DNA of 64,000 bases from Chrysemys picta bellii (lineage: Eukaryota), in contig NC_088797.1 in assembly GCF_011386835.1 (NCBI RefSeq), positions 100,688,001 to 100,752,000 on the forward strand, in the 5' to 3' direction. Within the stretch, counting starts at the first letter, position 1, and the number at the start of each line of letters is the position of its first letter. Positions 8,543 to 18,749 of this stretch are shown here, in pieces. The notes beneath the pieces were generated by a model. The model made no database searches, was not told the origin of the DNA, and saw only the letters and a list, made by a program, of their open reading frames with translations. Made by a program: the position numbers and the translations under genes.

Positions 8543-9487
8543 TAGGGTTGCCAGGTGTCTGGTTTTTTTTTTTTTTAACCAGAATGCCCAGTCGAAAAGG
8601 GACGCTGGTGGCGCAGGTCGGCACTGCCGACTGGGCTGTTAAAAGTCCATTCAGCGACACAGCAGGGGTCAGGAGCTAAGGCAGGTTCCCTGCCTGCCCT
8701 AGCTCCACGTGGCTCCCAGAAGCAGCCGCCAAGTCCCTGCAGCTCCTAGATGCATGGGTGGTCAGGGAGGCCAGGAATTGCAACCAATGGGAGCTGCGGG
8801 GTGGAGCCTGTGGGCGCAAGGGCAGCGCACAGAGCCTCCCTGGCCACCCATGCATCTAGGGGCTGCAAGGATCTGGCGGCCGCTTCCTGGGAGCCGCGGT
8901 AAGTGCCACTGGTATCCCGCACCCCAACCCCCTGCCCCAGCCTGGAGTCCCCTCCCGCACCCAAACTCCCTCCCAGAGCCCACCCCCCACCCCGCAACAT
9001 CCCAAACCCTTGTCCCAGTTTGGAGCCCCCTCCTGCACCCAAACCCCTCATCCCCAGCCACACCCTAAAGCATGCACCCCCAACTGGAGCCCACACCCCC
9101 TCCCACACTCCAAACCCCTTGGCCCCAGCCTGGAACCCCCTCCCGCACCTGAGCTCCTTATTTCTGGCCCCACCCGGATCTCGCAAGGCCAGCACAAAAC
9201 CCATACCCCCTTGCACCCCAGACCCCTGCCCCAGCCCGGAGCCCTCTCCAACACTCCAAACCCCTCATCCCCAGACCCACCACAGTGCCTGCACCTCCAG
9301 CTGGAGCCCTCAGCCCTTCTGCACCCCAACCCTCTGCCCAGCCCGGTGAAAGTGAGTGAGGGTGTGGGAGAACCAGTGATGGAGGGAGGGGGATGGAACG
9401 AGCAGGGCCTTGGAGAAGGGGCAGTACAGGACCTCAGGAAGTGGTGGGGATGTTTGGTTTTGTGGGATTAGAAAGTTGGCAACTCTA
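8543..9487. mobile_element. hAT non-autonomous element with internal GC-rich minisatellite-like repeats
   Basis: TIRs TAGGGTTGCC and GGCAACTCTA; perfect 8-bp TSD AGCTAAGA at 8535-8542 and 9488-9495; repeated ccccaacccc/ctggagccccctcc/cacccaaac units at ~8920-9340. Removing it rejoins the old gag frame (RQKAS*LQSSGLL). Confidence 0.92.
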
Positions 9488-9707
9488 AGCTAAGATGCTT
9501 TCTGTCTAACCACAGCAGTAGCTAAGAATTTAGAAGACATTTCAGTGGCATTGAAAGCAACCTGCAGGGAGAATTTCACAATCAACTGATCCTCAGAGAT
9601 GAGGGACTGAAATTAGTCCTTTTGGTCTTGTGCTAGTCATTACATTAAATGTATGAATTTAGAAAAGACGGTTACTCACCGTTGTAACTGTTGTTCTTCG
9701 AGATGTG

Positions 9708-9872
9708 TTGCTCATATCCATTCCATTAGGTGTGTGCGCGCCGCGTGCACGATCGTCGGAAGATTTTTACCCTAGCAACACCGGCGGGTCGGCTGTGGAG
9801 CCCCCTAGAGTGGCGCCTTCATGGCGCTGAATATATACCCCAGCCGACCCGGCGCCCCCTCAGTTCCTTCTT
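9708..9872. repeat. DIRS right inverted terminal repeat (core shared with the left ITR)
   Basis: 165 nt, exact reverse complement of 15717-15881 on manual alignment. Confidence 0.93.
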
Positions 9873-9909
9873 GCCGGCTACTCCGACAGTGGGGACGGAG
9901 GGCGGGTTT

Positions 9910-15508: not shown

Positions 15509-15716
15509 GAGCCCGGCCCCGCGGCCGGGGGAGAAAGGGGGGAGACGACCCCCTTAATCCCCTGGACTATTTAGAACAACTTTAAAACTACTTAACTAAT
15601 TTACAACAAACTCTAAGACTATAACTATAACTACAACTATGATACAACAAGATAAGCTAGGGAAGTGGAGAACAGCTAAGCAGCGCTCCACAGTTCCAAC
15701 GACCGTCAGGGGCGGT

Positions 15717-15896
15717 AAGAAGGAACTGAGGGGGCGCCGGGTCGGCTGGGGTATATATTCAGCGCCATGAAGGCGCCACTCTAGGGGGCTCCACAGCCGA
15801 CCCGCCGGTGTTGCTAGGGTAAAAATCTTCCGACGATCGTGCACGCGGCGCGCACACACCTAATGGAATGGATATGAGCAAGCACTCGAAGAAGAA
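15717..15896. repeat. DIRS left inverted terminal repeat (probable promoter region)
   Basis: Reverse complement of 9708-9872 plus the 5' terminal sequence; contains a TATA-like GAATATATAC on the minus strand. Promoter function is inference. Confidence 0.9.
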
Positions 15897-18749
15897 TAAA
15901 TGTTAAAATCATATATTATCATCAAGCCCTAGTAGTTTGCAACTCAAAATTGAAGTGCCACCTAGGAGTAGTTTTCCTGCCCAGGATGTATAATCGCTTG
16001 GACTCTTTGTCTGAAGGAGAGGATTTGGAGTGAGCTTGACAGTTTCTTACATTAATCGTGTCCACCACCAGGGGACTCGGGGTAGGAAGGAGAAGAAATA
16101 CCCCATTCCTTTGGCTGGAATACAATTTTTTTTTAATCTGGCCACTTGCAGTTGGGCAGAATAGTGGCAGTGTTTCCCATAAAATATGTGCAGGCAATAA
16201 CAGTGCCTCATTAATTGGTAGGGCTTTTTTTCCCCTGGGGAAGTAATATCTAGAATGTCCACCAGGGAATGTGGAGACTCCTGGACCTCTCCTAGCGGGA
16301 GCTGAAGGGATTCCACCAGGAGTTTCATTAGGTTCTGGAAGATTAAAGTCATCGGAAGAAGAGGATGTTGGTGGCATTACTGCCTCATCTAGTGAGGAGG
16401 ACGGCTGCTGGGGGCGAGCTTCCCTCAATCTGCAGCTTTTGCTCCTCTTGTACTTCTCTTGCTGCCTAGGGGGCACACAGCACCAGAGGATGGTCTGTCG
16501 GTGCCTGTGAACGATGCAGTACCACTGGATGTTGGGCATTTATTTCTAGTGGCACCCTATAAAACTGTTCACCAAAGTGCCCCCAAGGGTTCCAGTAAGC
16601 CCACTGAGGAGGAGAGGGATAGAGGAAAGATCCTCAAGGGGCCTGTTGGGTTTCTGGAAGGTCCTCTCCAGTAAATGGACTCAGAGGGGTGTGATGGTAG
16701 GTACCGAGACCTCAGAATCAGAAGTATCATCCCCTGGGCTAACAAGGGAGGGTCTCAAGCACCAGGGTCGGTACTGAGAGTTGGAAGTCTGAGATTCAGG
16801 TTGCAGTTGATGGAGTGGTACCAGGATGGGGGCTCTGGTAAAGTTCCTTATTAGGTGAGACTCCAGTTCATCCAAAATGAGACAGTCCTCCCGGGAAAAG
16901 GAGTGGAGTAGAGAGCTATGATAGCATCTGATTGTAGCCTGAGTCGGTGCTGGAACTGGGATTGGTATCGAGGACGAGTTTGTGCATATGGTATCGGAGA
17001 GGCTGATGGGACATCTTCTCTGACCTCAGAGCTGTAGGAAGATGCTAGTACTGGAGTGCAGGAAGAAGCCCTGTGTACATCATGGTGCCAAGAGGTGTCA
17101 AACAGTACTGAGCTAGGAGCCACCCTGTGTTGGAAGACTTCTCCACACACAACTTCTTATGTTGGTACTTGGTACAGATTTCAGCTGGTGCCTCAGCAGT
17201 ACTCCTTAAGGGATGCAAGGTCTCCTGAGAGCAAGATTTATGGGGTAATCTATCTCTCTTCTTTGTTTCCCTTGTAGGGGGGAAAGGCTTCTTTTTTTCA
17301 AAGTCTTAGCCCCTGGAGCTGCTGCTGGGGCTCCAGCTGTCACCAGGGTAGCCTGAGATGTTGAGGCAGATGTACAGGGAGTGGCAAAGAGAACCCTGCT
17401 GGAGTTAGGGAGCATTCCATTAAGAGGAACTTCAACCTAGCCTCTCTGTCGTTTCTTGTCCTACCTTTAAATCCCAAGCAGATTGTGCACTTTGACGGGA
17501 TGTGGATGTCTAGAATGCCTGTTGCTCTGTGGAAAAGACCTGTGTAGCAAGTCTAGTAGGGCTTATACTCCAGGGTCTTTGGCATAATCTGGTGTGCTGA
17601 AGCACTAAAACTAAAACCCTGAAAGAGTGGGAAGGGCGGTGGAAGCACAACTGCGTTGAAATTAATAAAAATGTGAAAATAAGAACATAACTAAATAAAA
17701 AGAGAAATTTACAATAAGTGAGAGAGGGTGGGAAGCGGTAGAACAGCAGACACCAAGCACTCCATCTCGAGCCACGGGTGGTTGAGAAGAAACTGAGTGG
17801 TGGCAGGTCTGTGCCTCCCTGTATGGCCTCGAGTGGGAGCATGAAGAGCTGCTCTGCACAGGTGCAGGTCTGCAGACACTGCTTTACAGTCTCCAATTCA
17901 GAGTGCACAGGTGCACACACATGCACACATACCCATGGGGACATATACTCCAAGAATCATCAGCAAGGATGACAGAGTAGTTCAGTTTCTGTGTCCATTA
18001 AGTCTTGGCCACTCTGCTGATTACAGCCAATTACTGTCAACTGCAGGAGTGGGACACAGGGCAGAAGTCAGATAGCCACCATTAGGTGGCATCAAGTTTT
18101 CATAACTCCCAAGTTGGACTGGATTTCAAACTTGCCACCCAGAGAAGGAGGACTTGAGGTATACTATTAGCAAACATTCTGAGCTGTTCACTCTCACTGG
18201 ATGTTTGGTTAAAACCCAAACATAAAAATTAATTACTGTAAATTATCCAGATGAAGTAGTATCTAGAATCATGAAGCATTTACCGTAAGCTACCAATATA
18301 TCTTTGACACATACAGAAGATTTGATTTTTTTACTATCACTTTTAAAATCTGGCTCCCACAGGAGGACTAAATAAACATCCTGATAAACGAATGTGGCAT
18401 CACTCTAAGTAGATCATGGATGGATGTACCTTCTTTCAGTGAGTTTGACAATCTCAGCAAAAAGATCCTGATGTCATTCAAGACATAGAAAACATTTTTG
18501 GCAGCATATATAAAACACAGCCAGGAGTAATTTCTGTTCCGGGAGAACTGACGGCTTTTGCTGAGACAACGTGAGTGAATATTAACTGGTAAACTGTACC
18601 ATTTTGGCAGAAGGGGGTGCTTTATTATCAACCTACCCTGAGATCAAGGCCAAATGTAAACTAGTAATAGTTTGTCATTTACACGGGCATTGAGAAGCAG
18701 CCTTAGCATAAGAGGATGTGCCTTCTTATATCCTTTCAGGTGAAAAAAC

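Follow-up and report, generated by a model that had tools for sequence, protein, structure and literature searches.

The window analysed here, a stretch of 64,000 nucleotides from Chrysemys picta bellii, the painted turtle (assembly GCF_011386835.1, contig NC_088797.1, positions 100,688,001 to 100,752,000 of the forward strand), carries on its minus strand a complete and recent DIRS1-like tyrosine recombinase (YR) retrotransposon. The element interrupts the dead Gag of a DIRS copy that is much older and lies in the same orientation (Table 1). The anatomy of both copies, the ends of 11 further full-length members of the family and contigs of related organisms altogether indicate that this young emydid-family DIRS probably integrated into the old Gag gene through short-core recombination of the published type, with the dinucleotide TT as the obligatory core.

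Anatomy of the young element and its host

The window element is 88-97% identical to the 11 other full-length copies of Chrysemys picta bellii, and carries features by which DIRS elements are recognized: inverted terminal repeats (ITRs), an internal complementary region (ICR) with two arms overlapping at a short junction, open reading frames (ORFs) for Gag, reverse transcriptase (RT)/RNase H and YR, no target-site duplication (TSD), and a short core common to the junction and the target. One arm of the ICR (9909-9973) is 100% complementary to the terminus at 9661-9725, and the other (9970-10009) to the terminus at 15857-15896. The overlap of the arms is four letters long (9970-9973) and reads TTCT, and the circle junction as carried in the ICR of the window copy is ...CCGTCTT-TTCT-TCTTCGAG.... 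An earlier reading of this DNA, made from its letters without database searches (hereafter the original prediction), had placed TTCT at both ends of the element (9661-9664 and 15893-15896) and at the ICR junction, and was correct in letters and coordinates at all three places.

The proteins nearest to those of the young element are from Chrysemys picta bellii (95-96% identity). Young Gag is 96% identical to Chrysemys proteins annotated as "serine/arginine repetitive matrix protein 2-like", and its relatives, present in turtles, show LAP2alpha-type Pfam matches; an exact look-up of the window Gag in a public gene collection gave no match. The RT/RNase H ORF matched Pfam RVT_1 with an E value of 1.3e-21 and RT_RNaseH, below the cut-off, with 4e-4. 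For its C-terminal 200 residues, no Pfam family was matched in a general Pfam scan made without a dedicated methyltransferase profile. The C-terminus of the third ORF shows in translation the HSTR motif, named for DIRS recombinases (PMC3266345), and a C-terminal Y. Its profile matches were sub-threshold, both for Phage_integrase (PF00589; E 8e-4, 19.6 bits against a cut-off of 27.1) and for the SAM-like N-domain (E 2.6e-3), and a weak match to Cre (E about 0.03) covered the N-terminal domain only. In the annotation of Chrysemys picta bellii (NCBI, UniProt; P0001, P0121, P0126, P0145-P0149, P0065), DIRS ORFs are labelled as host proteins or fused to host genes, examples of such labels being "serine/arginine repetitive matrix protein 2-like", DYRK1A isoform X1, LYRM4 isoform X1, and RB1CC1.

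Pieces of the host copy were detected on both sides of the element, with Gag residues 1-72 at 17633-17388, Gag residues 559-643 at 16224-15970 and RT at 8185-7341. The protein identity to the young element is about 34%, and the host is therefore old and of a different DIRS family. The insertion of a DIRS into a DIRS, which was the first claim of the original prediction, is thus borne out by the ITRs, the ICR and the three ORFs within 9661-15896 and by the Gag and RT pieces around them. Within the degraded host Gag, a 205-residue ORF (15922-16539, minus strand) adjoining the insertion site is still open.

The reading frame of the host across the insertion was analysed on a join of the two flanks of about 240 letters, in which all stop codons and the four letters of the window were kept, while the two flank pieces were searched separately. 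The joined translation proposed in the original prediction was reproduced letter for letter (frame 2). In a register test, each flank piece was slid without gaps along the whole 836-residue young Gag, with 20,000 shuffles for comparison. The best register of the upstream piece (20 residues) was at residue 648 (score 29, next best -8), and that of the downstream piece (57 residues) at residue 670 (score 40, next best -15); the score of either piece was attained by none of the 20,000 shuffles. Since these unique best registers leave exactly two codons, formed by two leftover letters and the four letters of the join, four letters lie between the flanks. The same frames were obtained when the two pieces were compared separately by tblastn with 13 Gag relatives. 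No DNA-level paralogue of the host family reaching across the insertion site was found in the window or in the 11 loci of the other copies, and the register is that of the protein level only.

Table 1. Positions of the young element, its host and the other repeats of the window
Feature	Position	Strand	Remarks
Young DIRS1-like retrotransposon	9661-15896	-	6,236 bp, TTCT counted at both ends; ITRs, ICR, three ORFs
TTCT at element 5' end	15893-15896	-	AGAA on plus strand; final letters of ICR-complementary arm 15857-15896
TTCT at element 3' end	9661-9664	-	AGAA on plus strand; only TT (9663-9664) common to all family copies
ITR arm, element 5' side	15713-15881		169 nt, 99% complementary to 9708-9876
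ITR arm, element 3' side	9708-9876		169 nt, 99% complementary to 15713-15881
ICR	9909-10009	-	Two arms, 65 and 40 nt, 100% complementary to termini
Gag ORF	12998-15508	-	836 residues, open; S/R-rich middle part
RT/RNase H ORF	11026-13389	-	787 residues, open; C-terminal part is where DIRS elements carry methyltransferase
Putative tyrosine recombinase ORF	10025-12913	-	Open; predicted YR at C-terminus; long overlap with RT ORF
Host old DIRS, 5' part	15897-17633	-	Gag residues about 1-667 (young-Gag numbering); tblastn, register test
Host old DIRS Gag, continued	9488-9660	-	Young-Gag residues about 670-726
Host old DIRS RT remnant	7341-8185	-	tblastn, 34% identity, E 2e-16
hAT-like miniature inverted-repeat transposable element (MITE)	8543-9487		945 bp; terminal inverted repeats TAGGGTTGCC... 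/ ...GGCAACTCTA; inside host Gag
Second old DIRS copy	18751-23836	-	In window
Third old DIRS fragment	58642-59978	-	RT end, YR, ICR-like stretch

The locus without the insertion

Logan contigs (not raw reads) of four runs were compared with the window over 9300-10100, that is, at the 3' junction. The contig of organism A matched 9459-9685 with no difference and thus runs 25 letters into the element, as expected of the filled site. In contrast to this filled site, the contigs of organism C (535 letters; 9453-9664) and organism D (534 letters; 9454-9664) matched the flank with the same five differences (five in 212 nt) and stopped matching directly after AGAA (9664). The further 323 letters of the contig from organism C match nothing in 9665-10100, and the contig from organism D continues in the same way. 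Because the flank is present and the element sequence absent in these contigs, the insertion is missing from two related organisms.

The end point of the match also bears on the letters of the target. With only AA or GAA in the target, the match would be expected to end at 9661 or 9660; its actual end at 9664 indicates that the uninserted locus read ...TTT-AGAA-.... Judged from these letters, the uninserted target held TTCT once, and the empty site that the original prediction held to be reconstructable is supported both by the register test and by the contigs of organisms C and D matching up to 9664. The prediction had also suggested a check at the orthologous locus. As far as the left flank up to AGAA and the non-element letters thereafter are concerned, this check turned out as expected; the continuation into 15897, and with it the right-hand half of the reconstructed plus-strand site ...GAATTT-AGAA-TAAATGTT..., is our inference.

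The contig of organism F (run X15) matched 9458-9664 with no difference and ended exactly at 9664, which is the branch point expected of filled and empty alleles. This end is compatible with heterozygosity, and the sample may be heterozygous. The four samples of the organism F study contained 0.83, 0.80, 0.70, and 0.69 of the sampled words.

The hAT-like MITE within the old copy was likewise correctly recognized in the original prediction. Its 8-bp TSD, AGCTAAGA, can be read directly at 8535-8542 and 9488-9495, and its interior contains C-rich tandem units of about 110 bp (8919-9319). The repeat, which ends at 9487, is present in high copy number, and in each of the four runs its ends are covered by thousands of contigs. 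Since the contigs of organisms C and D begin inside the repeat that ends at 9487, the MITE is older than the DIRS insertion.

The core in twelve copies of the family

The family sample consisted of 12 full-length copies from the painted turtle assembly, that is, the window copy and copies L001 to L011. The ICR junction reads GTCTT-TT-CTTCTTCG, with TT held once, in all 12 copies, and each of them starts with TT-CTTCTTCGAG and finishes with ...CCGTCTT-TT. The letters following the 3' TT vary among the copies (AC, CA, TT, AT, AC, CC, CTTCa, CC, CTTa, TC, and TC for L001 to L011, in this order, and CT for the window copy), and identity with the junction continues past TT for 0, 1, 0, 0, 0, 1, 4, 1, 3, 0, and 0 letters, respectively, and for two letters in the window copy. 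The sequence common to both ends is TT in all 12 copies, at least TTC in six and at least TTCT in three. This extra identity was detected solely on the 3' side of TT. On the 5' side there was none in the 12 copies, the letter before the 5' TT being G in seven of them and the T of the junction in none. When the copies were examined for the NTT form, the third common letter was C on the 3' side (6/12), and the letter 5' of TT never matched the junction. Around the target sites, eight of the first 10 copies have A at position -7, and seven of 12 have G at -1, a possible sign of a wider target motif around G-TT-C that is not significant once the number of positions tested is corrected for.

A proxy of the empty site at the DNA level was provided by copy L001. 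At its 5' side it is flanked by the 3' part of a related, older DIRS, of which the ICR is located at L001 7937-8001 (83% identity). This host ICR predicts a 3' extension ...AACAG-TT-ACAGTACAGG..., continuous across the site, and the flanks of L001 read ...AACAG-TT and TT-ACAGTACAGG, so that TT was present once and no more of the junction was shared. At another locus, a structure of about 1 kb (L007:16992-17978), lying 1.1 kb downstream of the full copy, contains DIRS cis parts only (ICR-like, ITR-like, and 5' untranslated region/Gag N-terminus), with 72-96% identity to the young family, and is possibly a short DIRS of the non-autonomous kind.

These data fit TT as the obligatory core of this turtle family, together with a one-sided preference for more identity. 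The TTCT of the window locus would then represent a target that happened to read so and gave a four-letter match. The original prediction had instead taken TTCT, identical in junction and target, for a YR crossover core of 4 nt. The window copy by itself agrees with this, having TTCT at both ends and at the ICR junction and a target that held TTCT once, and at least TTCT is also shared by L007 and L009; nine of the 12 copies, however, lack TTCT at the 3' end, and six (L001, L003, L004, L005, L010, and L011) have TT only. As the ICR junctions of these TT-only copies are identical to that of the window copy, the difference is not a family variant, and the host ICR of L001 shows a target with TT only. 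An obligatory four-letter core is thus very improbable. What stands of the predicted crossover footprint is the shared core without a TSD; the length of 4 nt does not, TTCT being common to both ends in 3/12 copies only, and it was on TTCT at both ends of the other copies that the prediction had staked itself. At the other extreme, TT could be the sole requirement, and CT at this locus and the extensions elsewhere would be chance matches. From the flank composition, CT is expected after a given TT with a chance of about 0.06, and half of the copies (6/12) have no extension at all. This explanation is nevertheless unlikely, because the summed extension (12 letters in the first 10 copies) exceeds that expected from flank composition (P = 0.0015; 0.005 with the window copy left out) and because all of it lies on one side of TT.

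Two further explanations concern the origin of the repeat at the ends. Duplication of the target by a staggered cut would also leave a short direct repeat flanking the insertion, but all 12 copies have one and the same repeat, TT, which occurs only once in the ICR junction, so that one of the two copies belongs to the element, and the empty site has the core once. A 4-bp TSD was rejected on the ground of this invariable TT and its single occurrence in the junction, and this origin of the repeat is hardly credible. The core, found once in the junction, once in the target and twice after the insertion, is rather the footprint of recombination at a shared core. A longer overlap of 6-8 bp might instead tolerate heterology, as in some conjugative-transposon integrases, with the mismatches sorted by replication. 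Such an overlap would reconcile DIRS with the spacing of cuts usual for tyrosine recombinases. Without biased repair, however, the 5' CTTC should be replaced by target letters in half of the copies, and all of these should end with TTCTTC at the 3' side. This was observed in none of the 11 informative copies (P about 0.0005, our own estimate), and the long heterologous overlap was rejected for the lack of target letters after the 5' TT in these copies; we consider it very unlikely.

The possibility was also raised in the original prediction that the element aims at resident DIRS copies, as reported for Dictyostelium DIRS-1. Both the window copy and L001 are nested in older DIRS and in the orientation of the host, other DIRS pieces are located within 10 kb at 4/12 loci, and all four DIRS copies of the 64-kb window lie on the minus strand. 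Direct nesting, however, was found in two of the 12 copies, or in one of 11 when the copy that prompted the question is set aside, which is not significant (P about 0.1-0.4) against a background of up to about 5%, this value being the share of repeats of the long terminal repeat (LTR) class (5.2% of the painted turtle genome; PMC13077969) and not that of DIRS by itself. One of the host sites is a Gag codon and the other a 3' extension; they belong to unrelated regions of the host elements, with only TT in common, and a regional pile-up of repeats explains the nesting equally well. Self-targeting by this family is therefore quite unlikely, and the sample did not bear out the suggestion. With regard to the neighbouring copies, the second old copy (18751-23836) has its 3' end near the expected 5' end of the host DIRS, and a head-to-tail arrangement of the two is possible; the termini of the second copy are too decayed for exact placement of the core.

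Proposed integration mechanism and comparison with known systems

In DIRS1-like elements, which begin and end with NTT, two ICRs overlap on a circular junction of 3 bp, and integration takes place by recombination of this junction with a genomic sequence identical to it and leaves no target-site duplication (PMC3266345). The short-core model with a 3-bp circular junction is also given, with citation of Goodwin and Poulter, in PMC7192593, and the ICR was shown experimentally to be essential in Dictyostelium (PMC7192593).

Along these lines, the two termini of the turtle element would be brought together on the ICR and give a circle junction, ...GTCTT-TT-CTTCTTCGAG..., as part of an intermediate that may be circular or splinted by the ICR. 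A tyrosine recombinase would then cross this junction with a target bearing the same short core, and identity with the junction may continue for 0-4 letters past TT, on the 3' side only. That this identity is one-sided suggests that the sense strand is cut at a fixed point 5' of TT and that pairing over the few letters that follow is tested as the strands are swapped.

Several points weigh against this mechanism. A crossover region of 2 bp is unusual, as tyrosine recombinases typically use 6-8 bp. The sample is limited to 12 copies, of which 11 were found through annotated proteins (95-96% identical) of a single assembly, and the preference for C after TT is marginal when taken alone (6/12; P about 0.03 by our binomial estimate). 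The 323 letters of the contigs from organisms C and D are only presumed to be those from 15897 onward. Finally, DIRS-1 complementary DNA (cDNA) of Dictyostelium was found in recent work to be mostly linear and single-stranded (PMC7192593), and a double-stranded circle is therefore not established.

A variant of the short-core mechanism, which we put forward tentatively and regard as improbable, takes the one-sided footprint as the result of a single strand exchange with testing of homology beside one cleavage site. The recombinase would act on the duplex formed by single-stranded cDNA termini annealed to the ICR, and replication would complete the integration. By analogy, the site may be formed by folding and be attP-like, as in CTX phage or the attC of integrons. 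If true, this variant would bring together in a single mechanism the ICR, the single-stranded cDNA found in Dictyostelium and a core of such shortness.

Short-core recombination at TT thus remains the explanation that we favour, and the locus represents a clean natural record of one vertebrate DIRS integration, in which the filled site, the element's own copy of the junction and the orthologous empty site agree. The family appears recently active, since the ICR arms pair with the termini without a mismatch, two related organisms lack the insertion and one sample is possibly heterozygous. Emydid turtles could thus be used to study DIRS insertion sites at the population level.

Among the known systems, Crypton DNA transposons (PMC3212892) are likewise eukaryotic YR elements and are thought to cross over at a short sequence of circle and target, but differ from DIRS in being without reverse transcriptase, the ITR/ICR system and Gag. 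The reaction of XerCD on the single-stranded DNA of CTX phage and that of integron attC with attI (PMC3442271; PMC2095811) are comparable by analogy only: a YR acts on a duplex folded from a single strand, one pair of strands is exchanged and replication finishes the process, and identity would be needed beside one cut only, which fits the one-sided pattern of the turtle family. These systems differ in that they are bacterial and use host-encoded recombinases or integron integrases, without sequence relation to DIRS beyond the recombinase superfamily. DIRS-1 of Dictyostelium discoideum (Cappello et al. 1985; Malicki et al. 2020, PMC7192593) works by the same ITR/ICR logic, its ends being restored on the ICR as template, and its copies are also found inside older copies; its nesting, however, is massive and forms centromeric clusters, whereas nesting in the turtle sample is not above expectation.

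The closest likeness in the organization is to the DIRS1-like elements of vertebrates (AcDIRS1/2 of Anolis, XtDIRS2/3 of Xenopus, and TnDIRS1a; Piednoel et al. 2011, PMC3266345). The turtle element shares with them the size of about 6 kb, the ITRs, the ICR near the 3' end, the right extension complementary to the ICR only, the long overlap of the pol and YR ORFs, the HSTR motif in YR, termini that end with ..TT, the core at the overlap of the ICR arms, and the lack of a TSD. Unlike the published 3-bp junction (NTT), only TT is common to all turtle copies, the preceding letter is never the T of the junction, and the extra identity is located 3' of TT. The published short-core model is thus confirmed by this locus and not altered, and what the turtle family adds to it, a TT core with extra identity on one side, is a testable hint on the position at which the recombinase cuts.

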